From: Schmidtea polychroa
Taxonomy: Eukaryota
Length of the DNA: 64,000 bases
Assembly: GCA_044892525.1 (NCBI GenBank)
Contig: CM097888.1
Location: 64,170,001 to 64,234,000 of the forward strand
Direction of reading: 5' to 3'
Positions 5,520 through 62,900 of the stretch are shown here, piece after piece. A program made the position numbers and the translations under genes. The notes beneath the pieces are model-generated. The model worked only from the letters and a program-made list of their open reading frames with translations. It was not told the origin of the DNA and ran no database searches. How positions within the stretch are numbered: position 1 is the stretch's first letter; every line of letters starts with the position of its first letter.

Positions 5520-5917
5520 TGATTACATATTTAAAGAACTGAAAGATATTAAAAAATCAGAAAGCAATATTTTTCGAATATCAGAAATAATTAAAGAAGA
5601 GGCTATTCAAAGTTGTTTAGAAATTACATCGATAGAAACATTTTTCGGAAAATTCAGCAGTGATCTAGATCAATATTTCACTAGTTTTCCACTTGCCAAC
5701 AGAAATAATGAAATGTTTTACATGTTAAATGAAATTAGTTCTTCCAATTTGTCAAAATATTTTACACAGGAAAAGGTTTCTACTGATTATTTTTAATGTT
5801 GAATTTTATTTTCAATTCTAGAACATTTCAATGGATACAAATTATGCCTGGGACTGGATTGATCAATTAATGCATTGTCTTCAAATGCATATAGAATCCA
5901 TTAAAAATTATCACCAG
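5520..5917 (+). CDS. Plakin-domain exons (5520-5775, 5822-5917)
   Basis: 46-nt GT..AG intron 5776-5821. The second exon (96 nt) reads NISMDTNYAWDWIDQLMHCLQMHIESIKNYHQ, matching the plakin-domain motif QTQWSWILQLxxCxExHLKENxxYxQ as recalled from dystonin/desmoplakin. Confidence 0.8.
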
Positions 5918-17900: not shown

Positions 17901-20900
17901 TATTCCACAAAATATGTTAACGACAGACTATATAAAATGTCTTCTTGCTAAACAGCTTCATTTCTATTTATCCTTAGAATACAAGGTAATATATTATCAT
18001 TTCAAAATGATTTTTATGCATAATTTAGATACTATTTGAAGAGTTGCAAATAAATGATGTCATACTTTGTAAAGCATTATCTGAAAATGAGGATTCAAGA
18101 ACAATTATTATTGGATGGCAAAGTCAAATGAATGATGAAATATTGGGTTATATATATATTTTTACTTATATTTTAGAATTATAAATATATCTCAGGAATA
18201 AGAGAAGCAATAAATGAAAACTTGATCAATGTAGAATATCAAACTTGTAAATGCAATAGAGAAAACAAAGATGAAATGAGTTGGAAAAACGCAATCGAAG
18301 AGAAACTAATGATTGCATGTGAAATTAATAAAAACATGATTACACCGGAATATATGAAATGTCTAATAGAAAGTAACACAAATGAATACATAAATACAGA
18401 TGAAATGGAAATCCTCGGAGCAGTAAATACATCGAATAATAAACTATTGGAAACAAATGAAGCAATTGAGGCAAATATATTAGATTTGCATGGACATTTA
18501 TTTATGGATGAATTATCAAACCATTTGATACCATTGAGACAAGCAATTGACAATGGATATGTATTGGCAAAGAAAAAAGATTTGGATTGTAAATTGCATC
18601 GAGTATTTGTTGGATCTGTAAAAGTTGGTAAAGACCAAACCGAAATGAGCTTAGAAGAAGCGATAAAAGCGAAAGTTATTGATCAATTAGAAAATGTTTA
18701 CAGAATCGAAGAAGAAAACATAGAAATACGAATAATGGATGCGATAATGTTGGGAATAATAAATATTGAAAACAAAACTGATGACGAAGAAATCAATTCT
18801 AAATCTTTTGCAATTGTACAAAGGAAACCGACTGATCCGGAAATCGAAGAATTATGTGAATATTCATCAAATAAAGAATTGAACATGAAAATATTGTGCA
18901 GGGCAATTGAATGTGATTGCATGAATGAATTTCTGATTTACGATGATGTGAAAGAAAGTATTGCGAAAAGCATATTCAACAATCATTTAGAACTAGATCC
19001 AATGATTTGTGATGTAGGCGAAGAAAAGCAAAGTATCCTAAAAGGATTCGTAAAGGGCTTGATCGATTATGAAGAAATGAAACGGTTGTTAGAAAATGTG
19101 AAAGATTTATTTGTCGGAGAAATATTAAAAACGATTAATGAAGATTCAAATGGAAAAGAAATAATGAAAGAATTGAATAGTGATGAAATGAAAGATCGAT
19201 ATGAGGAAATGTTAATAATTGATGAAAAGAATTTCACAATAGAAAGTGTATCAAATATTGATGAAAATGATGAGAATAAGAAATATCGAACAAAGATTAA
19301 TGTTGGAAAATTATTGAAAAATCTTAATCAATTGAAATGTTTTGATAAATTTGGAATCGACACAATTGGGAATGCAGTAATTGGAAGGAATGAAGATAGA
19401 AAGGAAGAGTTTGAAATGACAATATTTGAATCAGTAATGAATGGAACTTTTGATTTGGATGAATTGGAAACATTTGATGAGAAAGAAAAAGAAATGTGTT
19501 CAATGATTGAAAGTGTGAAACGAGGACTGATTGATGTGAAAACGGCAGAAAATATTTTGGATTGTTTAGAATCAATGAGCTTTGAAGAACTAATAAAAGC
19601 CAAAATATTTGACATTGAAAACAATTGTTTTGATGAAAATTTGTCATTGGAAGAAGCGATTGAAGAAGATTTGTTGAAACCAGAAGTTGTATATATGAAT
19701 TTATGTGAAGGAAATAAATTAATAAATTTAAGTAAAATGATTGAAAGTGGAATGTTGAATGCTTCGGAAAATGAAGTGAAGATCGAGAAAAGAAATGGCG
19801 AAATAGTTGAAATGAAATTGAATGAAGCACTGAAGGAAGAAAACGGAATATTGTCATGTGCTGTCAATAGTGAAGAAATAAAATTTCAAATTCCAAGAAC
19901 AATAAAATCTCTACTAAATGATCAAATGATCAAAAAATATATGGGTATTATTTTTGAAGAATCTGAAATGCATGAAATGACCATAAATGACGCTTTAGAG
20001 CAATCTTTATTAAGTGAAGAATGTTTCGTCCATTATGATAATAGGTTAGCAATAGTTTCATATCGCGGAGATAAAAATTGTTTTCACTTACTAAATATGC
20101 TGAATGAGTTAGCCAAAGTTCTCAAAGAATATTTATTTACTTCAGATATTGATAAAGATGAAATAATAGTTTTCAAAGTAAATATCATTTGTTTCTGAAA
20201 TTATTATTTTTTATTTGATCAATTAAGATTATGAGAGAAAAAATTGAAAATCTTTTTCTAAAAGATTGTAATTTCATTGAAAAAGTTGAACAGACTTTGA
20301 ATGTCGATCTCACAGTTCCGGAAATTAGAAATCTCAAATTGAAATATGAAGAAGTGAAAGAATTAATGGATGAAGTATGTTTTGTAGTTGATAAATATGG
20401 CAGTTATGGAATTTTGAGAACTTTGATCATTAGTATATAAAATTGTAAAAAAATTCTTAAAATATAAATACAAACGTAGTGAGATTATTTGAAATTGTAA
20501 AATTAATAAAAGCTCGCAACTCCGAAACATTTGAGGTTACCATTACAAAGTATTTTTTTTACTATTATTTTTTACTATTATTTCTTTGAAAAACATATTG
20601 CTTACTATTTTTGTCGTTACAAATCCTCTGTTATTTTGTACAATTTTCATGAAAATTTCTTTAAGCTTAATAATTTAGAAATACTAAGACATAGTAATAA
20701 GGAATGGGTATCTTGTTAATTTTTGGAATGTATTAAACTGTATTAAAATGTTCATTTTCACTCACGTGCAAGCTTACAAAATCCGATATAAAATTTATTT
20801 ATTTTTGTTAAGTATCTTGGGTATCTTGCGAATGAAATTACAAGGGTTTTCATTATTATATACCCATGTCTTCATTTTAATATTCCAATGTTTTCATAGT

Positions 20901-23900
20901 TATATTCCCATATTTTCATAGTTATATTCCCATGTTTTCATAGTTATATTCCCATGAAATTGATATTATTTAAATTCATGACAAAATATATTTAATCATG
21001 TGAATATACAAATAATAGGTTATTCTTTCTTAATTAAATAAATAAATCGTTGAAACAGAATTATTCTATAAAAATCTTAAAAACTTAATTAATTTTATAA
21101 ATGGGGAGGAAAACAAGAAAAACCGTAACTCGAGAATTATTTGATTTGGTTTGCACTTTATATGCAACAAATCGACATAGTATAGCTGAGATCAGCAGAA
21201 TAGTAAGTCTAGAGAGAAAGACTGTCGAGAAAATAATAAGACAGCACTAAAATAATGAACCTTTTGTTCCTGCTGCAGAGAAAAGGTCCAACACAATCTT
21301 AACCAGAAACAACAATTTCTCAGAAGTAGAACAGACCATTTTCAACTCTTTTGCGATCGAAAATTCGCATGTTCAAAACGATGTCAAAAATATCATTCAA
21401 GAAAGACATAATGTGACTCTAAGCTTGCCTACAATCAGTCGAAAAATCAGAAAAATAGGATTGAGTAGAAAGAGGTTGACATTGGTACCAATAGAGAGAA
21501 ATATTGATGCTCGAGCAATTTATGCATCTGAAATATCCAGAATAAACAATGAAAATATAATTTTTTTGGATGAAACTGAATTTAATCAACATTCACGCAG
21601 ATATTATGGTTATTCTGCTGAAAATGTTAAAGCATATGTGCAAGTGCGGGCCAATAAAGGCACTAATATAAGTTTAATGTGTGCTATTGGGTATGAAGGT
21701 GTGATAGCATATGAATATAAAACTGGTGCATATAACTTAGAAAGTTTTATAAACTATATCACTGAGAAGCTATGGCCATATTTTAGGAGGTATCCTCATA
21801 AACTTTTGGTTATGGACAATGCCAGAATTCACAAATTTTCTACCGTATTGCGAACTTTTTCGGATTTGCAAATACCAATAAAATATCTTGTGCTTTATTC
21901 ACCAGAACTTAACCCTATAAAAGAATTTTTTTCTATGATTAAATCACGTTTTCATGGTTTACGATTAAATAATACAGAAAGAACAATCGAAATGTGTTTA
22001 GACGATCTATTAACAGCAGGAACGGATTATCCTAATCAATGCGAGGGTTTTTATCTGAATATGCGTAGGTGGCTAGATAAAGCTTTAAGAAGAGAAATGT
22101 TTATATAAATAAATATTTATACGCTTTATTTTTGTTTATAAATTGTTTTGATATTTTTTTATTTATATAAATATTTAAATATATGTTAACATTTATTTAT
22201 TTTTATGGGAATATAATAATGAAAACATGGGAATATAGGAATGAAAACATGGGAATATAGGAATGAAAACATGGAATATAAGAATGAAAACATGTGTAAT
22301 TATATTTTGTCGTTTTTAAGAAATTTATTTGAAAGGCTTGTGGCATAATGTATAGATTGTATAGCGTTATATAAGTATGTACCTTTTAAAGAGTTTTTAA
22401 ATTTCATATAAATTGAGCAAGTAGGTTGTCATACATTTGAGTTTCAATAAGATGTTTAAGTTCAGGGTAAAAATGTACAATTTTGAAAACTTTACTGTGT
22501 TAAAGGTTTTTGTTAGAAAAGTTTATCAAGGACGAATGTTTCGGGTGAAAGTGCATCTTCATTTACGACTTGCGAAACATAGCGATTCTTCACCACCGAA
22601 AGAAGACAAAGTCCTTTTTATATTCAGGAAATCTTTTGGATTAAATTTTCTTGGATGCAAAGGACATACTTCAAAAATGAGTTACCTCACAAAGAGTCTA
22701 ACATTAAATAACGAGTGTTACTCTAATCTTATAAACTAACTCAATCAAAGCAATCATGATAAAATAGCAGGTTTCTAGAGGAAACTTCATATTCCATCAA
22801 GATAATCTCATCCTATACAAGCGTAATGCAAGATCAAAAATTTAACTGAGTTAATAAAAATTGTCATTACAAGAATAAACACCGCAACTATCAAAAACCT
22901 TAGTAATGGACATATATAAGTGATAATATCAAATTTTAAGCTCCTCTGAAGTTGTTACGTTTAACTTGAATGCCGAATCATATGAATCTTACTAATTTAT
23001 GATGTTTATGTTGCTATAATATATATTTTATAGTTGAAATAAATATTTTAATAAAAAATTTATAATAATAATTTTAACAAGGTTAAGGGTTCTGCTAAAA
23101 ATGATTATTTGGAATATTGGTTTAAAGTTTGCTTTGCAACCGATGTTGAGGTAAATATTAATTTATATAAAAAATGAATATTTTTAATAGGATTTCTTTG
23201 AAATTGTAACAATTACTGAAGTAATACTTTGTGAAGCAATATCCAAAAAAGACGATTACTGTACTGTCATATTGGGCGCTAAACAATGTTACGATGTCAA
23301 TATTATATGTAAATTTATTTTAAATAAAACGAATATTAAATTTTTATTGCTATACAGGTATAGCTGACGCTTTGAAAGTAGGAATCATAGACATTGATAG
23401 CCAAACATATAAATATGATCCAACTCAAAACGATAAAATGTCATGGAAATGTGCAATTTCCGAAAGATACCTTATTGCATGTGAAATTAATAAAAACATG
23501 ATTACACCGGAATATATGAAATGTCTAATAGAAAGTAACACAAATGAATACATAAATACAGATGAAATGGAAATCCTCGGAGCAGTAAATACATCGAATA
23601 ATAAACTATTGGAAACAAATGAAGCAATTGAGGCAAATATATTAGATTTGCATGGACATTTATTTATGGATGAATTATCAAATCATTTGATACCATTGAG
23701 ACAAGCAATTGACAATGGATATGTATTGGCAAAGAAAAAAGATTTGGATTGTGAATTGCATCGAGTATTTGTTGGATCTGTAAAAGTTGGTAAAGACCAA
23801 ACCGAAATGAGCTTAGAAGAAGCGATAAAAGCGAAAGTTATTGATCAATTAGAAAATGTTTACAGAATTGAAGAAGAAAACATAGAAATACGAATAATGG

Positions 23901-26900
23901 ATGCGATAATGTTGGGAATAATAAATATTGAAAACAAAACTGATGACGAAGAAATCAATTCTAAATCTTTCGCAATTGTACAAAGGAAACCGACTGATCC
24001 GGAAATAGAAGAATTATGTGAATATTCATCAAATAAAGAATTGAACATGAAAATATTGTGCAGGGCAATTGAATGTGATTGCATGAATGAATTTCTGATT
24101 TACGATGATGTGAAAGAAAGTATTGCGAAAAGTATATTCAACAATCATTTAGAACTAGATCCCATGATTTGTGATGTTGAAGATGAAAAGAAAAGCATTT
24201 TTATCTCTTTTATTAAAGGAAACATAACCTTAGAAATATTGTATAGGTTTCTATCGGGCCTAAAAGACATATTTCTTGGTGTAATAATAAAAAATCTTGA
24301 TAAGCAATTAAAAGGAAGGAAAATATTCGAAGCAATTGAAGCGTGCAATAATTCTAAATTGAATAATGAAAGTCTGGTAATTGATCAAAAATCTTTTACC
24401 ATTTTAACAGTTTCTAAAATTAACGAAGAAAGCATCTATTTAACATCTATTGAACCTACATCGGTAATAGCTAAACTGAACCAACTTAAGTATTTAGAAA
24501 CATATGGGATTAATACAAATAATTTGTCATTATCTTCTAAGAATAGAGAGCACGAGAACAAATTAAATCAAACAATATTCGAAGCAATAATGAATGGTGA
24601 TTTGAATTTCGATGAATTAGAGATATTTGACTCCAATAACCATGAAATGTGCTCAATTGTTGATAGTGTGGAACGAGGATTGGTAGATGTTCGAACTGCT
24701 AAACACTTGCTAGATCGCATGGAATCATTGACATTCGGAGAATTAATTAAAGATGGAATCTATGATGTACACAATAATAGTTTTGGTGATTTCCAATCAT
24801 TAGAAGAGGCAGTGGAGAATAAACTTGTCAGACCGGAACTCGTTTATCTTAGTTTACCGAAAGAAAATAAATTAATGAATCTAAGTAAAATGATCGAATA
24901 TGGAATACTCGATCCTCTGACAAATGAAATCAGAACACAAAATTCCGAAAATGAAATAATAACAATGAAACTTAATGAAGCGTTGAATTCGGAAAACAGA
25001 ATTTTAGCCACGGATTTGAATTGTCAGCAGATTAAAATGAAATTCCCTGAGAAATTAATAAATTTTGTTGACAAAAAACTTATCGAACCTGATCAAGACA
25101 TTATTCAATTTTCTAATAGTAAAATTGAACCACTTTACATTTCTGAAGCTTTGAAGAAAAGGTTACTGTGCAGGGAGTCACTGGTGAAGTTGTCTGGTGA
25201 TAATTTTGAAAATGAAATCATTATAATTGAATATTGTGGAAGCAATGAACCAGCAAGTCTAATGAATGAACTGAACGAATTATTAAAATATATTGACAAT
25301 TATCTTTCATATTTAACTGTAAGCTCCAGTGAGATTTTACCTAACAATGAAGTAGTGTTTTTCGACTTAAATAATACGTAATTCTCTTCAATTGTAGGAA
25401 ACGACCAAGTTGATTTTGAAAGATAAACAAAGCATTATTCATGATGTTGATGCATTTTTGTCCAAGAATTTAAACAAGGAAGTTAATAAAGAAAAAAGTT
25501 TTTATATTCAAAATCTTAAATTGAAAAATCAGCAAGCTAAAGAGCGATTGGAAGAAGTAATTTAATGTTTAAAAATAAAAATAATTTGTTTTAAGTTGTC
25601 TTTTTAAATCTTCATAACTTTACTAACTACTTCGCGCGGGATTTAGATATTAATTCCTGAAATGATCAAACCTATTTAACCTACTACTTCAACACCTACT
25701 CACGTTTTGTTTTTTTCATCAGTAACATTAAGTATTTTTAATATACGGTTCCTCCTTGACGTATTACCATTAAACTGACTTTTCCAGACTCTTCATGTGA
25801 CTTTATTATTAATCATAACTAGTACTGGCCAAACAAGAAATTGCTATCACCTAAACTAGAATGTTAAATCACTTTAAATTGGAGTACTGGAAATAGAAAT
25901 ACCCCCGTCAAATGGTTTAATAATGACGATATCATTAAAAAAGTAATGCCTTCACAGTGAATTTGGAATCATTCCATAGTTTCCATGGGACAGATTTCAT
26001 TGCTGTATGATGGAACATCTAATTTGTAAGTAAAATTTATATGGCAGAGTTCCATATTCTGATTCACAAACTTCAAAATCTCAATCGAATGCCTAGTTTC
26101 TTAATCTTCAGCTTTGGTTGTAATTGTTTTATATATCAAACCCAAACTAATGAAATTCCAACTGATAACAAGAAGTCTAGTGTAATGTATATTAAAACAT
26201 TCCAGATTTATTCAACTAGGAAGAAACTATCAAATTCCGAAAACCACGAACTCTGATATTCGTTTTGAAATGCCTATTCCAAGAAAGAGTAGTCATATTA
26301 AAATATCAACATCATAACATTCATAATCCAATAATATCTCAAAAAAAGAATGGCGAGATACACTGAAAATAGTCGCATTCACCGTGAAATCAAATAGGGT
26401 TTCTTATGTAAAAATTTCGAGACACCAAACTCATTGTTCGAAATTATTTGTTGGTTCATGCATATGTTACACCGAATCCATAAAATTGCCGAATACATTA
26501 AATCGGCAAATAATTGCTTAATTCATGAAAAATCCAAGTTTTTACAGAGAAATTCTTTCGGGCGATTTATGAGGAACTTATTTTACGTATTTCTGTACTA
26601 TTAAGGATGATGTCTTTTGTCACTGTTGATTGATCAACTTGATAAGATGTATTATATTTAGAAGTATTTGTTAACTTATCATTATAACATGTAGAACCAT
26701 GAGAGTTTATTAAGCGAAAGAATAATAAAATTTTACATAATTTGATCTGCTTAAGAGAGCAATGAAAATATTATGACTGCAGTTCGAACGAAATAACTGT
26801 AACTTGAGGTGTGGTGAAATGAGAATTTAATATTTGAAAATAGAAAACCAGCAAGTCTAAATTTTCAAATAAAAATCATTCATTTTCTATTAAAATTAAG

Positions 26901-29900
26901 ATTCAACATTTAATATAAAAAGTTAATAAAGAGTGACGAAGAACGAAGAATTTTCTAATAGGAAATTGACAATAGACACCAATGATAAACGATGAAAAAT
27001 ATAAAAAAAACAATTTTCAAGCTATTATTGATATAATCCAATGTACATAAAATAGTATGTGTAATTATTAAAAGACAAGCGCATAATTGAGGGAAACTCA
27101 ATTAATTACCTGATATTTGCAAAGTTTTGATTAGGAAATTTATCGACGTTGTTTTGGACGATGAGAATAGACTCGAAAATCCATAAAATACGAAATAAAA
27201 ATAGTGCAATACAGAAATTTTTATTAATGAAGTTATTAATTTCGTAGTATTATTTATTAATCTCCATAAATATTAAAATAAAAATCATTTTCATTGAAAA
27301 TAGTATTAGTTATAACGAAATCACATATAATCATCATGGAGTTAATCATAGAATTAGTGATTTGGATGTATATATTAAAAAATATAAGAAAATGGCATAA
27401 AGAATTTTCAAAAAACGTTCAACATCAAATTTTAGTTCAAAATAAGAACTTTATGGGTATGTTATGTCATGATAATTCTTCAGAATTATATTAAAATATA
27501 CAATATTATAATGAAAATATATATCAAGAAAATAGCTGAGCATTTCCAATATGATAAAATATATATTTGTTAATTAATTTATTTAATTGACGCCAAAAAT
27601 ATAAAAAAAATAGTAATTTCAGTAAATTGAATAAATATTATTTTTAGATCAAAGAAATAATAGGAAATGACCAATGGAATAAATGGTTTCACGTCCATTT
27701 TGGAAATGAAAGAGAAGTACATTTTTATGTGTATAAATTAGCTTTCAAACACTTTTTAGATATCGCCATCAGAAGACATGGTAAAAAGTAGAATTTTAAA
27801 GTACGAGGCATTATCTGGAAATGAAAATAACGAAACGATTATTATTGGTGTGAAACTTAAAAATGCAGATGAAATAATTAGTAAATTCATTAATTTTATT
27901 TTCGAAATAATATATATTTCTATGTATCAGGTATTGAGGAAGCAATTGTTGAAAACTTGATCAATGTAGAATATCAAACTTGTAAATGCAATAGAGAAAA
28001 CAAAGATGAAATGAGTTGGAAAAACGCAATCGAAGAGAAACTAATGATTGCATGTGAAATTAATAAAAACATGATTACACCGGAATATATGAAATGTCTA
28101 ATAGAAAGTAACACAAATGAATACATAAATACAGATGAAATGGAAATCCTCGGAGCAGTAAATACATCGAATAATAAACTATTGGAAACAAATGAAGCAA
28201 TTGAGGCAAATATATTAGATTTGCATGGGCATTTATTTATGGATGAATTATCAAATCATTTGATACCATTGAGACAAGCAATTGACAATGGATATGTATT
28301 GGCAAAGAAAAAAGATTTGGATTGTGAATTGCATCGAGTATTTGTTGGATCTGTAAAAGTTGGTAAAGACCAAACCGAAATGAGCTTAGAAGAAGCGATA
28401 AAAGCGAAAGTTATTGATCAATTAGAAAATGTTTACAGAATCGAAGAAGAAAACATAGAAATACGAATAATGGATGCGATAATGTTGGGAATAATAAATA
28501 TTGAAAACAAAACTGATGACGAAGAAATAAATCCTAAATCTTTTGCAATTGTACAAAGGAAACCGACTGATCCGGAAATAGAAGAATTATGTGAATATTC
28601 ATCAAATAAAGAATTGAACATGAAAATATTGTGCAGGGCAATTGAATGTGATTGCATGAATGAATTTCTGATTTACGATGATGTGAAAGAAAGTATTGCG
28701 AAAAGCATATTCAACAATCATTTAGAACTAGATCCAATGATTTGTGATGTAGGCGAAGAAAAGCAAAGTATCCTAAAAGGATTCGTAAAGGGCTTGATCG
28801 ATTATGAAGAAATGAAACGGTTGTTAGAAAATGTGAAAGATTTATTTGTAGGAGAAATATTGGAAACGATTAATGAAAATTCAAATGGAAAAGAAATAAT
28901 GAAAGCATTGAATAGTGATGAAATGAAAGATCGATATGAGGAAATGTTAATAATTGATGAAAAGAATTTCACAATAGAAAGTGTATCAAATATTGATGAA
29001 AATGATGAGAATAAGAAATATCGAACAAAGATTAATGTTGGAAAATTATTGAAAAATCTTAATCAATTGAAATGTTTTGATAAATTTGGAATCGACACAA
29101 TTGAGAATGCAGTCATTGGAAGGAATGAAGATAGAAAGGAAGAGTTTGAAATGACAATATTTGAATCAGTAATGAATGGAACTTTTGATTTGGATGAATT
29201 GGAAACATTTGATGAGAAAGAAAAAGAAATGTGTTCAATGATTGAAAGTGTGAAACGAGGACTGATTGATGTGAAAACGGCAGAAAATATTTTGGATTGT
29301 TTAGAATCAATGAGCTTTGAAGAACTAATAAAAGCCAAAATATTTGACATTGAAAACAATTGTTTTGATGAAAATTTGTCATTGGAAGAAGCGATTGAAG
29401 AAGATTTGTTGAAACCAGAAGTTGTATATATGAATCTATGTGAAGGAAATAAATTAATAAATTTAAGTAAAATGATTGAATGTGGAATGTTGAATTCTTC
29501 GGAAAACGAAGTGAAGATCGAGAAAAGAAATGGCGAAATAGTTGAAATGAAATTGAATGAAGCACTGAAGGAAGAAAACGGAATATTGTCATGTGCTATC
29601 AATAGTGAAGAAATAAAAAAGCAATTTCCAAGACAATTGAAAGACTTGTTAGCAAATGAAGAAGTCAATAAAGAGAATGACATAATAATATTTCCTGAAA
29701 CAAGAATAAAACCAATGCTGATAAATGATGGATTAAAGAACGGTTTGTTGAATGAAGAATCAATGGTGAAATTAATTGAATATAATTTGGAAAGCGGAGT
29801 AAATTCAATGGAATATTGCGGGGATGCAGAAATTGCAGATCTCATCAATGATTTGAATGAATTATCAATGATATTACCTGAATTATTAATGAGTTTGAAA

Positions 29901-32900
29901 AATGGAGAAAATGAAGATGGGATGGAAGTAAATGATAAATAAATGATAAATATAATTTAATAATAATAATTGAACATAGATATTAGAAACATATGTGAAA
30001 TCAAGAATAGATGAAAAAGTGAATTTATTTGATCGGATCAATGCATGTCTGTGTGATGATGTGGATAATGGAAATGTTGATGATGTGAGACCCGATGTGA
30101 AGGAGTTAAAGGCGAAATCTGATAAAGTTAAATCTCTATTTAATGAGGTTTGCTTAATTTATTTTTATTCAATTTAATTTGAAACATTTATCGATTACAC
30201 ATTTTTATTATTGTATACATTTTTTTATTTAATAGAATCGATATTTTTTATTACATAATTATAATCAATTTATTTAAGTAGTAAAACAAATTATTTTCTT
30301 CCTTTCACGAAAACCATAATTTTTATGAATATATATAATTAAAAGTCTATCCTAAAGTTTTATCAATGCAACATATAAAAACATTTAGCGCTAATTTCAT
30401 AAAAAAAAATTAGGAATGCAATTTCCTTGTTTTATTATTTAATTTCTTTATCTAAAATTTAGTAATTATTAGACTTATTCAAGAAATGTTTGCTTCTTTG
30501 TCTTTATGTGCGTTTTCTCTTAAAAAGATTGATTTTGAGTATGATATCGTTAAAAATCTCGGAAATGGAATTTTGTGTTGACAAGAATATTATTAGCGAA
30601 ATTCGTAAGAACATGTTTGACTATATTACACTTCTACACCAAAATGAGCCTGGCGTCCTACTTTTGACACAAATAGACCAAAAGATACCAAAAGTAATTT
30701 TTTGAGAATAAATTTTAATTAGTCAACAGAGAAGACGGAAGAGTTATTCCCACGTAAATCGTGTTTGATGTCTTGCTTATAATTTTCATAATTCCTATAT
30801 TCTTCTTAAATAAATAAATATATCTTGTGAAAACTATAAACCAATAGCACGTTCCATACATTACATTGATATATGAAAATTAGTTGTAAGTTATTTAATA
30901 TTTTATAGGATATTGACATTGCTAGTCTAAATCTTCATATGAAACTTATACAACATCCATTTGGGAAAATATTTAGTTATACACAAACATTGAAAAATAT
31001 TATTTTCTAAAAATTCTTCTGAAAACTTCATTAAACTTTAAAATTAAAATATGTACTAAAATTTACAAAATAATATTTATTTTTAAATGTATATTTAGAT
31101 ATTAGGAGCTTGAACTTTATGTTTAGAGTTGGGCTGTAATTCATTAAAAGCTTCGTAAAACTTATCCCCACGCGCTTCCTAAGTTAACTAAAACATATAA
31201 AGTCAAATTAGAAAGACATGTAACGAAACTATTTTGAATCGTTTGATATATATATACGAAGAAAATGGTTACAAGGTTGCTGAAAACATCTTACAGTTTG
31301 CTGTTTTGTAACAAGGACTTCAGCAAAATAAAATATCAAACAAAATATTAGGAAATTTAAAATAACTACTTCTTTGAATTATCATATTAATGAGAGCCAG
31401 GTTACAAAAGTCCCACATAAATGAGCGGAGTCTCGTATTATGCATATATTCATAAGCTTTATATTTCACTGTGCATCTCAAAGTTCGAATCCAGAAATTA
31501 AAAATTGCATTTGTTGACAATATTCATAATCATACGATACTAGGAGACAAAAACTACTACAAGTTTGCCTGATTAAATTAATGGAACGTCATGAAGCTAT
31601 CATGAACACTAAAATTGAACGATGCAGTGATTCTTAGTTTTGGAACAATTAAGTTTTTTGTAAAACTGAGATTCGTCTATTACCGCAATTTTTGAATAAT
31701 TTGTTCTGTTAATTTGATTTTATAATATCATCATTAGGCATGTCAAATATATTTGTGAGTACTTTTTTTGTTTCAAATATTGAAAAATTGTGTTTTGACC
31801 TCTTAACTGACCTAAACTTGGTTGAGTATATAAGAGTCAATTAGATACCGTTCGCAAAACATTAAATTTTTCTTTTAAAGAGATTTATGAACAATGGTGC
31901 ATGAAAGATAATTGTAATATTAACATTAAAAAGCTAAATACTGCAACTACAAAACATTAAAGTGCAATGCTCCAACTGATTATATTGAAAAGTATTTCAG
32001 AAATATTTTCATTCTCCTAGTGAAAATAATTCTTCTCTGGAGCTTTTGTAGTATAATTTCGAATTAAGTAATTCAAGAGCTTTGTAAAATGAAAACTGAA
32101 TTTTATTCTCCGAATTTTTATAAAAATCTTTTGACTTATTTAATTTGCATAATACTAATTTTATCGGTTCAATTCGACCTACCAAGATCAAATCTCAAGC
32201 ACGTCATTTGTAACGGTTTCAGATATATTTTATTTTGTAATAAAATTTGACAATTTATTTTATTATTCAATGATAAATAAAAATTTTTTAGAGATGGTTG
32301 ATACTTTTACAAGTGATTTATTAGCATTCCTGTACAGAAAACTTTAATAAACCAAATGTTACTTTAATTGAACTAAAAAGTTACAAACTGATTTTGCTTC
32401 ATCATTATGTTGAGGATACCTAAAATAGTTATTAAAAGGATTGAAATAATTGAAATAAAATAAACAAATAAGAAAAAATATATTGTTTCAGACTCCTAAA
32501 AGGCAAGAGGAAAAAAATTCGGAAAATAAGAAAAATAATTGTAGAAAGAATAGAATACAACAATTGATTAGATAATAAAAAGTAACTTATTAATTTTCAA
32601 ATGCAAATCAAAACAAAATTTGGAAAGTGAAAAACAATCAAAAAAGGAATTGTTATTATTTCCACTGTTTGTCTGAGATTACGAAGCAAATAAGAGTAAA
32701 ACACTAAAAATTCGTTTGTTAACCAAAATCATTCATAATACAATGTTTGGACAAACAACCAGATTATCAAGATATTGTTCAATATTATAAAGTTAAAAGA
32801 GAAAGCAAAACTAAGTACGACAAAATTTTAAACAGAAAATGTATAAGTAGTGAAAACAAATAAAGGGAAATCATAATTGAGATAGGGGTTTAGAGATTTT

Positions 32901-47900: not shown

Positions 47901-50900
47901 ATATTATTATTTAATATTTAAGATTCTAAATAAACATAATTAAGCTGCTTACGTATTTTAGATAGTCAATATTTCTAGTAAGAAATATAAATATGATTGT
48001 AAACAAATAAATTTCGCACTTAATTGACTGATAAATATTTAAATTTGAAATAACTGTTAAAATATCCACAATTCAATTTCCTTTTATTAAGTTGTTTGGA
48101 AAAACAGGGGTTTTTTTGACTTTTTTTAAAAAAATTTTTACTCACACCTGGGCACCCGCCACGGCACACAGTTTGGACAACACTGCTTTATAGTAATATC
48201 ACAACACAAATTCAAACTAATATGCCCAAAAATAAGATGACATAAGAGCTAACAGAAACAGAAGTATAAAAGATGAACCAATTTATTTAGTTCAAAACTC
48301 AATCATTGATAACTGTACAAAACGCTACATTTCTTCTGAATATTTAACATTTGAAGTACAGCTCTGTGATTTTCGAGGTCTTATATATTTTCGAACATAT
48401 ATATCTACCAAACTAGATAAATATGTCATTCTAGTTATTTTTCAATGTCCAAATTTGTACCGGTAAAGTTGATAATGTTATAGAAATAATTCCAGAAGAA
48501 TTGTTTGGAACCTGAGTGAACTAACAATCTTGAAAAGGTAGAAAAATCACTATGGACAATATTTTTACAACTATGAGCTTAGCCAAATACATGAGGAAAA
48601 GGAAGATTGTAATAATGGGAACTGAAAGGAAATCTAGAAAATTAGTTCCTGTCGAAATAAATGAAAAAAGCAGTCTAACTGCCTTGAAGGTTATGTTTCA
48701 CGATGACTTAACGTTGTGCAGCTATTCTGATAAACCTGGAAAATATGTCATTTTGCTAGGTTCACTCACAGTATCAATCAGTATCAATGGGAAACCCGAA
48801 ATAGTCAATTGTTATAATAAAACCAAATCTGGGGTAAACACTTTGGTTATATTCATCTAAAAGAAGACTTAATCGCTAGCCTATTTTTATATTTTACAAT
48901 ATAATTAACATTACTGCTTACAATGCCTATATTCCTTATATTATAAAATACTCAGAATTCATAATGAAGCATAAATCAAGGTTCGGAAGTGAATTTTCCA
49001 AAAAAGTTTATTTGTGAGATGAATAAAAAATTTAAAAAACCCCCCGAAGAAAATATTTTTGAACTATTCAATAAATCTTCGTAAAGAGGAAGATGTTAAA
49101 TTTGTCAAAGATCTAAAGACAGAAAGTTTGTTATTTGTAAATTTTTGTCAATAAATTTTAAATAATAATATTGCTTTCTTACTGGGATTTAAAAGACCTC
49201 AAAATTCGTTTGTATGTAAAAAATATTTCGCAAAAGTGCTAAAGATTTTAACTTATCAGAAGTGTAATTGAGATATTTGTAAAAATGGTATCTGTGTGGT
49301 TGGAAAGAATATGACGCTAAGTAGTTAAATGAGGAATATCAATTTAAATTAATTGAAAAATTTGTCATAAATCTTATTGCTCAGACGGCGCCAATAGTAA
49401 AAGTGATAGAATTTTTTTATCTGAATAAGAATTTATCGTTATTATTATATTTTTTGTGATTATTATTTGTCTTAATATTGTAAAAGTATTTTGTTGACAA
49501 CTGGTTATTATACAAAGTTCATTTATACGAACTTTTATTCTACTAAAAATACATCAATAAATTCGTATAAATGAACTTAATATAGTAGCTAGTTTGAATA
49601 ATTCAATGTTTAATTTGATAGATTTAAACAAATGAATTAATCTTTAAATAACAGTTCTAATAATTCATAAAAGTTACATTAATTAAATTTATAAGAATTT
49701 TTTGGAAATTTGGAAAATAAATATTTTACAAGTTTTAAGATATTTGAGAAAAATTTGTTGAAAAATAATTAAGGTTAAATTGAATAATTTAGTAAAATAG
49801 TTTTGAATATAAAACTAATTTATTTGAAAAATTCTATCGTTAAAATTACATGTTCATTAGCAAAAGTATAAATTCCTTCTCTGATTTATGAAATTCATAA
49901 TTTAATGATTGAAAGAGTTACATCTTATTTTTGGAAACAGAATCGGAATATTCATAAATTACTTTTCTTTAGATAAATGAACAAGAAAATTGCATCAAAC
50001 TAAATAATTTGTTTTCAGTTCATATTGGAACAAACCTTCAAGTAATTCTTAAGTGCCTTTCAAAAATATAAAACGTAATTTTATAGAATCTTTTAGAAAA
50101 TGTAGAAATCACTGAAGTGATAAAATGCGATGCAATATCTGGAAATGAAAATAACAAAACGATTATTATTGGTGTGAAACTTGAAAATGCAGATGAAATA
50201 ATTAGTAAATTCATTAATAATTTTATTTACGAAATAATATATATTTCTATGTATCAGGTATTGAGGAAGCAATTGTTGAAAACTTGATCAATGTAGAATA
50301 TCAAACTTGTAAATGCAATAGAGAAAACAAAGATGAAATGAGTTGGAAAAACGCAATCGAAGAGAAACTAATGATTGCATATGAAATTAATAAAAACATG
50401 ATTACACCGGAATATATGAAATGTCTAATAGAAAGTAACACAAATGAATACATAAATACAGATGAAATGGAAATCCTCGGAGCAGTAAATACATCGAATA
50501 ATAAACTATTGGAAACAAATGAAGCAATTGAGGCAAATATATTAGATTTGCATGGACATTTATTTATGGATGAATTATCAAATCATTTGATACCATTGAG
50601 ACAAGCAATTGACAATGGATATGTATTGGCAAAGAAAAAAGATTTGGATTGTAAATTGCATCGAGTATTTGTTGGATCTGTAAAAGTTGGTAAAGACCAA
50701 ACCGAAATGAGCTTAGAAGAAGCGATAAAAGCGAAAGTTATTGATCAATTAGAAAATGTTTACAGAATCGAAGAAGAAAACATAGAAATACGAATAATGG
50801 ATGCGATAATGTTGGGAATAATAAATATTGAAAACAAAACTGATGACGAAGAAATAAATCCTAAATCTTTTGCAATTGTACAAAGGGAACCGACTGATCC

Positions 50901-53900
50901 GGAAATAGAAGAATTATGTGAATATTCATCAAATAAAGATTTGAACATGAAAATATTGTGCAGGGCAATTGAATGTGATTGCATGAATGAATTTCTGATT
51001 TACGATGATGTGAAAGAAAGTATTGCGAAAAGCATATTCAACAATCATTTAGAACTAGATCCCATGATTTGTGATGTAGGCGAAGAAAAGCAAAGTATCC
51101 TAAAAGGATTCGTAAAGGGCTTGATCGATTATGAAGAAATGAAACGGTTGTTAGAAAATGTGAAAGATTTATTTGTCGGACAAATATTGGAAACGATTAA
51201 TGAAGATTCAAATGGAAAAGAAATAATGAAAGAATTGAATAGTGATGAAATGAAAGATCGATATGAGGAAATGTTAATAATTGATGAAAAGAATTTCACA
51301 ATAGAAAGTGTATCAAATATTGATGAAAATGATGAGAATAAGAAATATCGAACAAAGATTAATGTTGGAAAATTATTGAAAAATCTTAATCAATTGAAAT
51401 GTTTTGATAAATTTGGAATCGACACAATTGAGAATGCAGTCATTGGAAGGAATGAAGATAGAAAGGAAGAGTTTGAAATGACAATATTTGAATCAGTAAT
51501 GAATGGAACTTTTGATTTGGATGAATTGGAAACATTTGATGAGAAAGAAAAAGAAATGTGTTCAATGATTGAAAGTGTGAAACGAGGACTGATTGATGTG
51601 AAAACGGCAGAAAATATTTTGGATTGTTTAGAATCAATGAGCTTTGAAGAACTAATAAAAGCCAAAATATTTGACATTGAAAACAATTGTTTTGATGAAA
51701 ATTTGTCATTGGAAGAAGCAATTGAAGAAGATTTGTTGAAACCAGAAGTTGTATATATGAATCTATGTGAAGGAAATAAATTAATAAATTTAAGTAAAAT
51801 GATTGAATGTGGAATGTTGAATTCTTCGGAAAACGAAGTGAAGATCGAGAAAAGAAATGGCGAAATAGTTGAAATGAAATTGAATGAAGCACTGAAGGAA
51901 GAAAACGGAATATTGTCATGTGCTATCAATAGTGAAGAAATAAAAAAGCAATTTCCAAGACAATTGAAAGACTTGTTAGCAAATGAAGAAGTCAATAAAG
52001 AGAATGACATAATAATATTTCCTGAAACAAGAATAAAACCAATGCTGATAAATGATGGATTAAAGAACGGTTTGTTGAATGAAGAATCAATGGTGAAATT
52101 AATTGAATATAATTTGGAAAGCGGAGTAAATTCAATGGAATATTGCGGGGATGCAGAAATTGCAGATCTCATCAATGATTTGAATGAATTATCAATGATA
52201 TTACCTGAATTATTAATGAATTTGAAAAATGGAGAAAATGAAGATGGGATGGAAGTAAATGATAAATAAATGATAAATATAATTTAATAATAATAATTGA
52301 ACATAGATATTAGAAACATATGTGAAATCAAGAATAGATGAAAAAGTGAATTTATTTGATCGGATCAATGCATGTCTGTGTGATGATGTGGATAATGGAA
52401 ATGTTGATGATGTGAGACCCGATGTGAAGGAGTTAAAGGCGAAATCTGATAAAGTTAAATCTTTATTAGCGCAGGTTTGTTTAATAATCATTATTTCTTT
52501 ATAATATTTTAAAAGTATTTATTAAACTTTTTGTTATTTTTTATTTCTAATTATTTAATATCTTATCTTTAATTATTTCTTTGCCAACGAATATTAATAT
52601 AGTATTTAAATTATTAATTGTTTGTTTATTTGTGAATGCAATGTGTTTTTCTGTTGCTGTATTTTTAAGTTAAATCCCTATTGGAGACAATTTGCTAATA
52701 TTATTTGCATATTCCAATTAGTTTTTAATAATTTTTTTTTCAATTTAAACTTTAGTTTTGTCATATTTTATAACAATCATAATATTTTGTTTAATAGATT
52801 TTATGTTCTTTCATCCATATGATGTTCTTTTTTGATTTTTATCTATTTTGAAAAATATATACTGATTTGAATCGTATTTCACAAGTATGTTCAAAAATTT
52901 TTATTTTTTATTTGAAATGAAAAGATCGTTAATCTTTTAAATGTTAAGTTTAAATTTTTCGAATTGAAATTTGGTGATTGTTTGACTTTTTTATATATTT
53001 TTTAATGAGTTGTTTAAACTCAGAATATTTTTTAATGTAAATTATTATAAGAACTTTTTTCAATTTTCACCTCTGATTTCTTTTCAATTGACATCGTATT
53101 TATTAAAAAATGTTGACTATTTATTGATTCATTGGCAAAATTTTCTAACAATTACAATGTTAAGTAACTTAGATTGTTTAAATTGAGTTTATTAAGTTAA
53201 TGAATAAATATTGTTTATTTATAAAAATGAATTTAATTTAATTTTCAGTTAATGTACCTAGGAAATAAGGTATAGGCAGGCCCGGCTTTACTAATGAAGC
53301 AGAAGATGCAAAGCATCGCGGCCCTACACGAACAACGGGCGCTAAAATCCGAAATTTAAATGAAATTATTTATTTTTCAAATTTAAATTTTTTTTCAAAT
53401 TTAATTTTTTTATTGAATGACAGATGAAAAGTAGGCGATTTTTTAATACAGATTTCCAAAAAAAGTTTTTGGTTTTTTTCTTTAATTGTAAGTACTTGTT
53501 TTCAGTTTTTTATGTGTTCCAGTAATGTTTGGACATTGTTAATATTTTCAATTTTTATTGAAGAACAATTTTTGTGAATGTAAAAATTATATATTTGTTG
53601 TTTGAAATATTTAATAACAAAGTTTAAAAAGTGTAATTTTTTGAATAACAAAATTTTTGTGAATGTAAGTATATTATAGTGATTTTTTTATTTTTACTTA
53701 TTATTTTGTCAATAAAGTATCTTTAATATTAATTGAGTAATGGTGAAAGTAAGTATCACTAATAGTACTAATTTTTTTAATGCTTCCACAAAAGTTGGGA
53801 TGTTTTAAATCAATATAGCAAAATAACGCTTAAACCTTTATCGGATACACGATGGGAATCAAGAATTGATGCTCTTAGTCCATTAAAAAACAATATTGGT

Positions 53901-56900: not shown

Positions 56901-59900
56901 ATAATAATGCTAATTATGCGTGCCAGCATTTATACTTATTATACTTTTACTTATAATACAATATATATTTTATTTATAAATTAATTATTTAAATATCCCT
57001 AACAGGCCGTAAAAATATTTCAAACAATAAATAATCAATTAGTTAAACATCATTTTTATATAGACCACAATTTTACTAAACAATTATCCAAAGTAAGAAA
57101 AAGGTAGTTAAAAAACTGCAAAGTAAAAGAAATCTCACAAAATCTTCATTTTCCAAATGGAAAAAAATCATTAAGCAACACAACTATTTTGTGGCCACTA
57201 AAAAATATTGTTAAACTAGAAACATCATTTATAAATGGTGAATATATGAACAATGTTTTATTAAAATACCGAAAGATCTTTTCTGTGATTTTACAAAGAA
57301 ATCAGAAATGATTACAAAAAAATAAAAATACGTTATTATCGACTAAGCTGTAAGGAACAAACTTTTAGGAATGGTGCAAAATATAAAAAGTTAGCACGAA
57401 AACGATCTAATTTCGGCATCGAGAATCCTAATAGCATGTGAAGAATCATACTTGGTACGTTCAATATGAACCCAGACTAGATGCTAAAAGAAGCTAACAG
57501 GAACGGTAAGACAAAGGGATGTAGGCTTATTTTTTAAAAAAAGATCCATTGATGTCCATACCTTCTTTCAGCAATTCAAAAGATCCAAAACGGCAATTTA
57601 GAAGAAAATATATGGCTTTGAATTTTCAAGAAAAGTTCAAATTCATATTACAAATTTGGAGAAATTCCCTCACAGATGTTTCTTCTTATGTCTGAATAAA
57701 TAAAAGTCGCTGAGCGCAAGATCAGGACGGTAGGGAGGGTGATCTAAAAAAATAAATCTATTTGTCTCAATTATTGTCATTGTTTCCGCATTTTTGTGGA
57801 TTTGGGAGTTGTCTTGAAGGGGCCATAGAGAAGACCTAGTGGCTTTAGATGATTACGTCTGTATGTGCCCACGAGTTTGTTGTAGTTGCTTGAAATAATA
57901 TGCAGACCTTTTCAGAAAAATACGTACAGGTCATGTAACTTTGACCTTGAAAAATTGTCAACATCAATGAATTTCGATGACATGTTCCATATATTATGTT
58001 CCTAGAACTCGTTTCTCCAGGGAATATTTATTCGCTGGACTCACGCTTTGTCTCAGAAACATACTGGGATAAAGGAGGTTCACCAACAGTATTGATATTT
58101 CCGAGTAATTAGTCACCATGTTCTTCAAAAGTGAGAAGGTTAACCTTTGCAGTATTACTTCATGTTTTCAAGTTTTCAAAGAAAAGAAAACGTAGGAAAA
58201 ACTTGGATGCTCAATTTTCCTAAGCCAGATTCATTAAGAATGACAGCACACCTCCGGTACTGACATTCAACCGCTGCGAGATATTCTTGATAGTAATTCG
58301 CCGTTCTTTTACAATTTGGAAACATTCCTTTCTTTTGAAGTCAGAACACTGACTGGTGAACATGCTTGAACTGACGAATCCAATCGAAGATTGTATTACG
58401 AGAGGAGCATATTATCTCCATAAGTTGTTTGAAACAAATTTCATATTAGCTAACTGTTATCACCAAGCAAAACCAAGAATTTTATCACACTTTGATACTG
58501 ACAGGATGTTAAATGATTTAAAAGTTAATTGAAAATATACTCTACCACACCGCTATGCAGGTGAACAAGGTATATTTTTATAATCACATATTAAATATTA
58601 TGATTCTTTCTTATGAGTAAACACACTAAGTATGTCAATATGTAAACTATCAATGACCTCAAAAAGAATAATTAGACAAACCGCCAATTGCAAGAAAAAC
58701 GAGTCGAAAAATTGAATAAACGGTTACCAATTTCCTGACATTAAAAAAATGAATATTAACGAACTTATATTTATTGAGACAGTTCGGACACTGACCAAGA
58801 AAAACACAAGAATCGAAATTCGTTTCTTCATTTAAAGAACATATTTTGCATGATGCAGTTTATTTTCACTATATAATTCATCAATATTTACTTTGTTTAT
58901 AAACCTTTCGATAAAATATAATGATAGTGATAGAGTGGGTTATACAAATTATATACAAATAAGGCTAAGACCGTTAAATCATCAGTAATTTTGTGAACTT
59001 CTTAAAAAGTCAATTTCTAATATTTCTATCTTTCAATAAAAGTGGCTTTTGCAGGTAAAAGAGGTCACAAACAGTACAACTTTACTTCCTTATTTACGTT
59101 TCTGCATTAACCTACTCCGAAACAAAACGGTTAAATGTAATAAGGTTAATAAATTTTTAAATTGAAATATAATTTCCAAGAAATCTTTCTAGACAATGTT
59201 TATCATTATTTGAAATTATTTTTCAAATAAAATTTCACAGATAATTCATCTATATATTTAGATAAGTGATCAAAGAAATTGTGACAAACTCCAAAATTGG
59301 TTTGCTATTCATATCGGAACCAACTTTCAAGTTTTTATTAAATGCTTTTAAATGCAATGAAACGTATTTTTGTAGAATCTTTTAGAAAATGTAGAAATCA
59401 CTGAAGTGATAAAATGCGATGCAATATCTGGAAATGAAAATAACAAAACGATTATTATTGGTGTGAAACTTGAAAATGCAGATGAAATAATTAGTAAATT
59501 CATTAATAATTTTATTTACGAAATAATATATATTTCTATGTATCAGGTATTGAGGAAGCAATTGTTGAAAACTTGATCAATGTAGAATATCAAACTTGTA
59601 AATGCAATAGAGAAAACAAAGATGAAATGAGTTGGAAAAACGCAATCGAAGAGAAACTAATGATTGCATGTGAAATTAATAAAAACATGATTACACCGGA
59701 ATATATGAAATGTCTAATAGAAAGTAACACAAATGAATACATAAATACAGATGAAATGGAAATCCTCGGAGCAGTAAATACATCGAATAATAAACTATTG
59801 GAAACAAATGAAGCAATTGAGGCAAATATATTAGATTTGCATGGACATTTATTTATGGATGAATTATCAAATCATTTGATACCATTGAGACAAGCAATTG

Positions 59901-62900
59901 ACAATGGATATGTATTGGCAAAGAAAAAAGATTTGGATTGTAAATTGCATCGAGTATTTGTTGGATCTGTAAAAGTTGGTAAAGACCAAACCGAAATGAG
60001 CTTAGAAGAAGCGATAAAAGCGAAAGTTATTGATCAATTAGAAAATGTTTACAGAATCGAAGAAGAAAACATAGAAATACGAATAATGGATGCGATAATG
60101 TTGGGAATAATAAATATTGAAAACAAAACTGATGACGAAGAAATCAATTCTAAATCTTTTGCAATTGTACAAAGGAAACCGACTGATCCGGAAATCGAAG
60201 AATTATGTGAATATTCATCAAATAAAGAATTGAACATGAAAATATTGTGCAGGGCAATTGAATGTGATTGCATGAATGAATTTCTGATTTACGATGATGT
60301 GAAAGAAAGTATTGCGAAAAGCATATTCAACAATCATTTAGAACTAGATCCAATGATTTGTGATGTAGGCGAAGAAAAGCAAAGTATCCTAAAAGGATTC
60401 GTAAAGGGCTTGATCGATTATGAAGAAATGAAACGGTTTTTAGAAAATGTGAAAGATTTATTTGTCGGAGAAATATTGGAAACGATTAATGAAGATTCAA
60501 ATGGAAAAGAAATAATGAAAGAATTGAATAGTGATGAAATGAAAGATCGATATGAGGAAATGTTAATAATTGATGAAAAGAATTTCACAATAGAAAGTGT
60601 ATCAAATATTGATGAAAATGATGAGAATAAGAAATATCGAACAAAGATTAATGTTGGAAAATTATTGAAAAATCTTAATCAATTGAAATGTTTTGATAAA
60701 TTTGAAATCGACACAATTGAGAATGCAGTCATTGGAAGGAATGAAGATAGAAAGGAAGAGTTCGAAATGACAATATTTGAATCAGTAATGAATGGAACTT
60801 TTGATTTGGATGAATTGGAAACTTTTGATGAGAAAGAAAAAGAAATGTGTTCAATGATTGAAAGTGTGAAACGAGGACTGATTGATGTGAAAACGGCAGA
60901 AAATATTTTGGATTGTTTAGAATCAATGAGCTTTGAAGAACTAATAAAAGCCAAAATATTTGACATTGAAAACAATTGTTTTGATAAAACTTTGTCATTG
61001 GAAGAAGCGATTGAAGAAGATTTGTTGAAACCAGAAGTTGTATATATGAATTTATGTGAAGGAAATAAATTAATAAATTTAAGTAAAATGATTGAATGTG
61101 GAATGTTGAATGCTTCGGAAAACGAAGTGAAGATCGAGAAAAGAAATGGCGAAATAGTTGAAATGAAATTGAATGAAGCACTGAAGGAAGAAAACGGAAT
61201 ATTGTCATGTACTATCAATAGTGAAGAAATAAAAAAGCAATTTCCAAGACAATTGAAAGACTTGTTAACAAATGGAGAAATTGATTACAATCAAGATCTT
61301 ATTTGTTTTGGGAACACCGTTTTAGAAATGAGATTGAAAGACGCTTTTGATAAAAATCTTGCAAATCTGGAATCTTTTGTAATTTTAACTGATAACATTT
61401 CTCATAACGCGAAGAAAGTTTTTTACTATGGGAATAATAATTTAATCGATATCATGCTGGGCTTATATTATCTTGGATGTAATTTATCAGAAATTCAAAA
61501 GAAGTGTGTCAGTGAAGATATGAATTTAAATAATTTTGATGTTTGTTTAATTTCTTTTTGTTTGTTTTTTAATTTATTCATAGGCGGTTTTCTCCGAATT
61601 CCAATTATTATCCGAGGAAAAGCATATATTATTTAACAAATTTAACGAAATGCTTAGCGGCTATTCTCCATCATCTGTGAAAAACATGACATCCGACATG
61701 AAGAATCTTTGTTCTCGAAAGGAAGAAATTGATTCACTATTTCATGATGTAAGTTTTGTAGTTCTTTTAATTATCACTTTAAATATTTTTATATTTATAT
61801 TTTTTATTTATTTGGTTTACATATTTAACTTATATGTTATATAATTTGTATAAATTATATTGTTATACTTGCTGCTGTGTATATATCCTAAGTCATGTTT
61901 CTATTATCATTTGAAGTGTTTTTGATTTTTTCCTTTTTAATAATATTATTATATTATCATTATATATCAGTATATTAATTAATAGAAAATTAAATACTTC
62001 TGTTACCAAGATGAATTGCCACTGCGAAAAGATGTATTTTACTTTAATTCACCATCAATCAACAATTGAATCCCCTCTTTAATGTCTTGCGAGGTATCGA
62101 AAATAAATGTTAAATCTTTGCCAAAATGTATAACACTCTGACATAGTTCCTTTGCTGTCAATACAATTTCACCTTATGCCTTTAATTAAGAAATATTTAT
62201 GTCTAAATTATAAATAATTAAACGATTAATGAGTATTGTCACTGGGATTTTTAAAAATAAAAATTCAACTGAATTTATTAAAAATATAATATAAGATACC
62301 AATTCTTTATATTGTATTATCAACAATAATGTGAGTTTGTATCTCATTTAAGAAGTCATATTATTTGGCCATTAAAAGTATTTGTATGTGTATTAAAAAT
62401 TTTTTGCCTTAAATTTAATATAACACATGATCCATTTATTCAATAAACAAAAGGTTAGCTTCCAAGAATTTTATAATTATTTTATATATAGTTTCTAGAC
62501 AACATTTTGAAAAAAATTTAATAAAAATTCCATAGAAAAATTTGTGCATTATCGAATTCAGATAATCGCGTATTATGTTTAAACTGTAATCAATTTTTCT
62601 TTCCTTTTCTTTCACACTTCGTATCAAGTGAAGAATGAGAAAGGAGAAGATTCAATGAGAAAAGAGATGGATTAAAATCAGAAAAATCTTGGTTTTGTAT
62701 AAAAACAGGACATATTTTGGGTCGAAATTCTTTCAATTAATAAACACTGAGGATATATCTTACCTATTTATTTATCTGATAATTTTCCACTGAAAATTTT
62801 ATTATATTATATATATATTAATAATACATATTTTTTAAAATAGGTTCAAGAATCTATGTTAAATTACAAAGTAACATTGTCAGAAAATCAGAATTCTTGT

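Follow-up and report, generated by a model that had tools for sequence, protein, structure and literature searches.

Described plakin-repeat genes and the locus of Schmidtea polychroa

In the plakins described so far, the repeat region is contained in one or two very large exons. In the Drosophila gene shot, 33 plakin repeats are encoded by one exon of 10,497 nt, and these repeats are divergent and not clearly grouped into the canonical 4.5-repeat domains (PMC2173965). vab-10A has two isoform-specific exons, one of which is large (PMC2199363), and the entire coding sequence of epiplakin, EPPK1, is located in a single exon, which precludes alternative splicing (PMC8782857). The distant plectin-only giant protein P0004 is also encoded by a single uninterrupted frame, 13,083 nt in length. 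The present work deals with a locus of Schmidtea polychroa located in a window of 64,000 nt (GenBank assembly GCA_044892525.1, contig CM097888.1, positions 64,170,001 to 64,234,000 of the forward strand); all coordinates below are positions in this window. On its plus strand, 18029-61748 is occupied by seven consecutive modules (M1 to M7), each comprising three or four exons with plakin repeats. The array is real, clearly delimited and expressed; its plakin-repeat cassettes contain introns and have probably been amplified recently and homogenised by conversion. It is probable, though short of assured, that the array is part of one long plakin-family gene, in which it has grown by crossing-over, has been homogenised by conversion and is spliced module after module.

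The first-pass annotation of the window, made from the sequence alone, considered this layout unusual among plakin-repeat regions, and the comparison with shot (one exon), vab-10A (two), EPPK1 (one) and P0004 (no interruption) bears this out. Like shot, MACF1b and BPAG1b, the locus appears to encode a giant protein in which divergent repeats separate a plakin-type region at the N-terminus from a helical rod; both of these regions are hinted at by the flanks of the array. Unlike shot, about 16 kb of coding sequence is distributed over 27 exons in seven tandem cassettes, which bear the marks of recent amplification and conversion. With EPPK1 the locus shares the expansion of the repeat region by tandem duplication of whole units, and the repeat copies of epiplakin are presumably nearly identical as well. 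In contrast to EPPK1, each unit here has three short internal introns, and introns of several kb lie between the units. VAB-10A is likewise the product of an invertebrate plakin locus and carries its plectin repeats on exons of one isoform class, but its repeats end the protein, whereas the cassettes described here end in donor sites followed by an in-frame exon.

A parallel can be found outside the plakin family. Human nebulin and titin contain triplicated multi-exon blocks, which are frame-neutral and about 99% identical, originated by unequal crossing-over and readily change in copy number. The array is similar to them in having frame-neutral multi-exon blocks in tandem, with about 99% identity, inside one gene. 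It differs from them in the protein family and the type of repeat, in conversion tracts that are confined to exon blocks and in the retention of an old module with a patch.

Organisation of the array

The window is AT-rich (about 27% G+C) and has no runs of N. Seven long open frames of 658-687 residues each were found on the plus strand between 18.2 and 61.6 kb. The chance of a single open frame of 660 codons is about 6e-28, given a stop frequency of about 9% of codons in a sequence with 27% G+C. The exon boundaries were read directly from the sequence and then verified by script. The repeat unit is a four-exon module of about 784 codons, typically composed of exons of 69, 118, about 2,000 and 147-168 nt; the introns inside the modules are 40-79 nt long and those between the modules 2.1-7.5 kb long. 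All 27 module exons are preceded by AG and followed by GT, and the length of each module is a multiple of three, with phase 0 at the start and at the end. This agrees with the earlier prediction of GT-AG splice sites throughout and of frame-neutral modules. When joined, the modules give 5,437 codons with zero stops; the open state of the whole was predicted correctly, and the count replaces the estimate of about 5,450. The predicted scheme of seven modules with exons of 69, about 118, about 2,000 and 147-168 nt is valid overall, except that M1 lacks the 69-nt exon and the second exon of M3 measures 121 nt. None of the 69-nt exons contains ATG, and none of the last exons ends in a stop.

M1 consists of 18029-18146 (118 nt), 18196-20177 (1982 nt) and 20228-20374 (147 nt); its core is like that of M3-M7 and its 3' tail is diverged. 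M2 is an old diverged copy with exons at 23082-23150 (69 nt), 23191-23308 (118 nt), 23358-25318 (1961 nt) and 25398-25556 (159 nt). The GT at 25378 was also considered as the donor of its large exon and was rejected, as it would give an intron of 20 nt and a shift of frame; the in-frame donor is at 25319. M3 comprises 27648-27716 (69 nt), 27760-27880 (121 nt), 27931-29927 (1997 nt) and 29980-30147 (168 nt), and from 27797 on it forms the first unit of a repeat of 6,147 bp. The exons of M4 are 33793-33861 (69 nt), 33907-34024 (118 nt), 34078-36074 (1997 nt) and 36127-36294 (168 nt), and those of M5, at 39940-42441, have the same lengths (69, 118, 1997 and 168 nt) and the coordinates of M4 plus exactly 6147. 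M6 occupies 49973-50041 (69 nt), 50087-50204 (118 nt), 50258-52254 (1997 nt) and 52307-52474 (168 nt). M7, with exons at 59262-59330 (69 nt), 59376-59493 (118 nt), 59547-61540 (1994 nt) and 61584-61748 (165 nt), has a homogenised core, and its 3' tail and last exon are diverged.

The array is preceded on the same strand by a truncated module 0. It consists of an exon at 17622-17733 (112 nt), resembling the 118-nt exon, an intron of 43 nt and an exon at 17777-17985 (209 nt), resembling the start of the large exon. In a tblastn search, the module protein matched positions 17773-17973 of module 0 with an E-value (E) of 4e-8, and plectin-repeat proteins matched it as well. Further upstream, an open coding exon at 17300-17572, the 5' limit of which is not fixed, ends in a GT donor in phase 0.

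Plakin repeats encoded by the modules

The module exons encode divergent plakin (plectin) repeats; the first-pass annotation had proposed plakin repeats and named a profile search for Plectin as a check. The Pfam Plectin profile (PF00681) recognised all seven large exons with whole-sequence scores of 24.9-29 bits at a cut-off of 20.5, while no individual repeat in the large exons passes the Pfam threshold alone. An exhaustive HMMER search against 1.84 billion representatives yielded 97 matches with E down to 2e-36. The top match, P0001 (703 residues), shows just 45% identity. After a few fragments, the matches are giant proteins of 2,000-6,200 residues, each aligned in 10-20 stretches with about 25% identity. 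Two of these giants were scanned; they scored 820-900 bits for Plectin and contained no other real domains. A word-index protein search with a large exon of 661 residues returned no matches, probably owing to its low-complexity words and to a length filter that leaves out giant proteins; a sequence search of PDB found nothing.

The plakin-repeat fold consists of a beta-hairpin followed by two antiparallel helices, and classically 4.5 such motifs form one globular domain. The AlphaFold2 (AF2) model of the large exon of M4, built on an alignment of 15 rows, contains about ten motifs of a beta-hairpin and a helix. The predicted local distance difference test score (pLDDT) is 80-90 at residues 370-660 and below 50 at residues 128-370. 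The best PDB matches found by Foldseek are the repeat domains of desmoplakin, envoplakin and plectin, and they are weak (E 0.055-1.5, template modelling (TM) score at most 0.24); a VIA comparison with solved plakin-repeat domains was weak too (Z 2.1). It seems that each large exon would provide roughly ten beta-hairpin/helix motifs, and these plakin repeats are probably not packed into canonical 4.5-repeat domains.

Some relatives of the module were found in metagenomes. One contig (L001, 45% amino acid identity, 29% G+C), from a JGI sample that is presumably a forest soil, contains a 118-like exon, the large exon and a last exon in this order, each separated from the next by a short intron. 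Another (L002, 24% G+C) shows where a large exon ends, followed across a short intron by a last exon that closes with '...DE|gt', as in this array. The first-pass annotation had stated that a general occurrence of the same layout in orthologues would speak against its reading; this applies in part, as part of the intra-module exon layout recurs in L001 and L002. Since each of these two related contigs shows part of it, the intra-module layout seems to predate the amplification, and the module seems to be old. In a third contig (L003, JGI 3300013315), a module-like large exon at 54-1271 is split into frames 54-1010 and 1026-1271. Such a split suggests a stop or a frameshift, arising from a pseudogene copy or a sequencing error.

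Duplication and probable gene conversion

The comparison of the modules with M4 in windows of 30 codons revealed a mosaic. M1 and M3-M7 share 97-100% identity from about codon 50 to codon 600, a similarity that extends to the short introns, and divergence to 40-60% identity is seen in the tails of M1 and M7. M2 is mostly diverged, with the exception of a patch of 722 bp (23474-24195), which is 98% identical to the other modules and, judging by this alignment, is a gene-conversion patch. M3-M5 form a tandem repeat of 6,147 bp with 99.6-99.8% identity, and between introns I34 and I45 the identity is 99.97% along 3,645 bp. The long inter-module introns are otherwise unalignable, save for a short repeat common to I56 and I67. 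The identity of M4 to M6 and M7 begins at the 69-nt exon (77% identity in this exon between M6 and M4), and in M6 it stops about 10 nt beyond the last exon. The ratios of non-synonymous to synonymous substitution rates (dN/dS) are 0.39-0.43 for M2 against the other modules and 0.56-0.68 for module pairs with diverged tails; values of this kind are indicative of coding constraint, though relaxed.

The identity of the cores including the short introns, the unalignable long introns and the triplication of M3-M5 lead us to infer unequal crossing-over combined with gene conversion. The module would predate the species. Its tandem multiplication by unequal crossing-over would have given the seven full copies and the truncated one, and the array can grow because each frame-neutral copy gained or lost keeps the reading frame. 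Gene conversion would keep the blocks of exons and short introns near-identical, while the long introns would drift and gather transposons. A very recent triplication of the 6,147-bp unit would then have produced M3-M5.

The number of copies was compared with the word depth in a DNA run (X6). The depth is 50-55 in unique flanking contigs and 391, 372 and 302 in three contigs of the core, which gives core to flank ratios of about 7.4, 7.0 and 5.7. The first two core contigs lie inside the stretch common with M2, where seven copies are expected, and the third lies outside it, where six are expected. By this coarse measure, the ratios fit the assembled copy number well.

Transcription and splicing of the modules

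Contigs of RNA and DNA runs were aligned with 18000-23999 of the window. A contig of RNA run X1 joins the end of the module 0 exon at 17985 to the start of M1 at 18029, with a loose end at 18027. Junctions 18146>18196 of M1 and 23308>23358 of M2 are present in RNA contigs, as is a junction of the 118-nt exon to the large exon of the M3-M7 type, and one contig covers 10 nt across 20177>20228 in M1. Intra-module splicing and expression were seen in RNA runs X1, X2 and X4. In X2, an RNA contig of 2,350 nt should pass over a module boundary within its first 515 nt. Of the words sampled from the diverged part of M2, 84% are contained in X1. Run X13 (organism B, RNA, 2025) contains 14% of the words from the diverged part of M2, and these could originate from a close relative or a mixed sample.

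The location of the modules inside one longer transcript, proposed at the outset, is supported by the absence of ATG from the 69-nt exons and of stops from the module ends, by the RNA join 17985>18029 of an upstream exon to M1 and by a phase-0 exon after M7. The most likely product, with all modules spliced consecutively, would be a giant cytolinker in which divergent plakin repeats account for about 5,400 residues; this repeat region would be preceded by an N-terminal region of the plakin type and followed by a helical rod.

Several observations weigh against this picture of one plakin-family transcript with consecutive modules. No RNA contig bridges one module to another, either consecutively or by skipping, within 18000-23999, where 20374-23082 stayed unbridged; consecutive inclusion is an assumption here, because no join of a last exon to a 69-nt exon was seen. 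In X1, the contigs specific to M1 or M2 have a depth of 5.5-7 compared with 154-164 for the shared core (about 25 per copy), and by contig depth, which is coarse and a poor gauge of expression, M1 and M2 seem to be four- to fivefold less abundant in this RNA than M3-M7. The low depth could be due to a 3' bias affecting a very long mRNA, to noisy contig depths, to an internal promoter or to M1 and M2 being skipped. The RNA contigs of 2016-2017 at 18539-19863 are a mixture of module variants and match no single module. Since neither the seven modules of the assembly nor DNA run X6 contain three of the RNA letters (19211 A, 19227 G and 19350 C), the RNA runs come from another strain, which makes the module-diagnostic differences unusable; the array differs between strains at the base level. 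Run X6 may itself be the same sample as the assembled one, and its depth ratios are then not independent support. Finally, the predicted fold resembles the solved plakin-repeat domains weakly (Foldseek E >= 0.055, VIA Z 2.1).

Alternative explanations

The alternative that survives best is variable inclusion of the modules, the idea behind the tunable-length cytolinker of the first-pass annotation. It could come about by skipping, by inclusion of 0-7 modules, by mutually exclusive choice or from an internal promoter, and would result in cytolinkers of graded length. [quoted passage not shown] However, any internal tandem duplication has to be frame-neutral in order to survive, so frame symmetry is no evidence of regulated choice. 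The gap in depth has simpler explanations, and contig depth measures expression poorly. The RNA contigs over 18000-23999 contain no skipping junction. The inter-module introns, when compared with each other for selector or docking sequences and for conserved flanks, show no similarity apart from the just-duplicated pair I34 and I45 and the short I56-I67 repeat. They share no conserved sequence that could have a regulatory role, and the identity between modules sets in and ceases no more than about 10 nt from the outer exons. Taken together, variable inclusion is unlikely, and the consecutive splicing of the modules in one gene is preferred.

Somewhat more doubtful still is the combined possibility that the array functions as a copy-number-variable, alternatively spliced 'length dial', in which strains vary in the number of modules and cells in the subset included. 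In that case, ongoing unequal crossing-over would make strains differ, and M1 and M2, for example, would be used in few of the transcripts, a pattern that their fourfold lower RNA depth might suggest; the outcome would be plakin cytolinkers of graded length.

It is very unlikely that the modules are separate genes, or that some of them are dead pseudo-exons never spliced into mRNA. The introns of 2-7.5 kb with transposons between the modules would be in keeping with this, as would the poly(A)-like loose ends within large exons in run X4. On the other hand, start codons are absent from the first exons and stops from the module ends. Each of the 27 exons is open and has retained its GT-AG sites, and even the old M2 has a dN/dS below 1. 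In RNA, an upstream exon is joined to M1, and both a junction and the body of M2 are present. The X4 contig ends, which carry 9-12 A at 19161, 19494 and 23605, were tried as transcript ends and rejected, since each directly follows an A-rich genomic run; they are probably products of internal priming by oligo-dT. The least probable alternative, that the near-identical copies, above all M3-M5 with their exact spacing of 6,147 bp and identity of 99.6-99.97% including the intron, are a repeat over-expanded in the assembly, can be set aside, because the DNA word depth of the core, 5.7-7.4 times that of the flanks, fits six to seven copies and not four to five, and the three copies are distinct at a few positions, with about four coding changes and one intron difference between M4 and M5.

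Flanking regions and relation to spectraplakins

The first-pass annotation assigned the array to a spectraplakin gene. Membership in the plakin family has held; the spectraplakin identity is putative, and a shot- or MACF1b-like order of plakin domain, plakin repeats and rod is plausible. No CH, EF-hand or GAS2 domains were found within the window of 64 kb, and the hints of a plakin domain and of spectrin repeats in the flanks are weak. Upstream of the array, a candidate exon on the plus strand at 5846-5917 encodes 24 residues resembling the end of the spectrin repeat that precedes SH3_10 in P0020 (tblastn E 0.001-0.002, 42% identity; a weak match, given by one of 105 queries). P0020 contains SH3_10 at 192-256 together with Plectin repeats, and among the 105 retrieved proteins a plakin-domain region was present in P0020 and P0034 only. 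A candidate SH3-like exon of the plakin domain at 10565-10747 on the plus strand matches residues 216-278 of P0020 with tblastn E 4, a lead only, and is collinear with the 5846-5917 match on this protein.

Downstream of M7, an exon on the plus strand at 62844-63875 (1,032 nt, 344 residues) is flanked by AG and GT and is in phase 0 on either side. Its AF2 model is all helical, with helices of 30-50 residues, and is poor (pLDDT 43). Among the Atlas clusters, its closest neighbours by features are spectrin-repeat proteins, for example nesprin, MSP300 and desmoplakin-like spectrin (0.94, low recognition). Judging by the model and these neighbours, the exon may start a spectrin-repeat rod. The SH3 and spectrin domains expected from a profile search did not emerge: Pfam gave no SH3_10 or Spectrin match in the candidate upstream exons and no Spectrin match in the downstream exon. 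Nothing CH-like was present in 1-18000, and the gene probably begins upstream of the window; EF-hands and GAS2/GAR, if present, would lie beyond the window end at 64000.

Transposons and other open frames

The intron between M1 and M2 contains a transposon of the Tc1/mariner type (region 20800-22400), with its DDE_3 transposase at 21101-22108 on the plus strand, in frames 21101-21250 and 21413-22108 (Pfam DDE_3, 2.7e-21). The element is present in a very high number of copies, with a word depth in X6 of 600-5,900 compared with about 50 in the flanks, and it also occurs in RNA contigs. It is not part of the plakin gene product. A variant with an internal deletion (joint 20962>21709) was seen in both DNA and RNA runs. 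In the 7.5-kb intron between M5 and M6, an open frame of 284 residues at 47032-47886 on the minus strand gave matches to zf-C2H2_12 (1.5e-4) and DUF4371 (5e-4), both below the curated cut-offs, and is probably a transposon (transposase) remnant.

An antisense open frame of 261 residues recurs on the minus strand inside four large exons, at 29063-29848, 35210-35995, 41357-42142 and 51390-52175. Most likely it is no gene, and is a consequence of the purine-rich coding strand and of the near identity of the copies.

Implications for the plakin family

The array leaves the understanding of how plakins work unchanged. Its architecture is a novel variation within the plakin family; comparable processes are known from other giant structural genes and, in the case of plakin repeats, from epiplakin. 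The locus is a clean natural case of concerted evolution within a gene, combining conversion tracts confined to exon blocks, a patched old copy and a triplication that is a few mutations old. It represents a second route to a giant repeat region, beside the one or two very large exons of the described plakins, in which a frame-neutral, intron-containing module is gained, lost and homogenised as a unit. The array also offers a system for asking if cytolinker length is of consequence and if it differs between strains or tissues.

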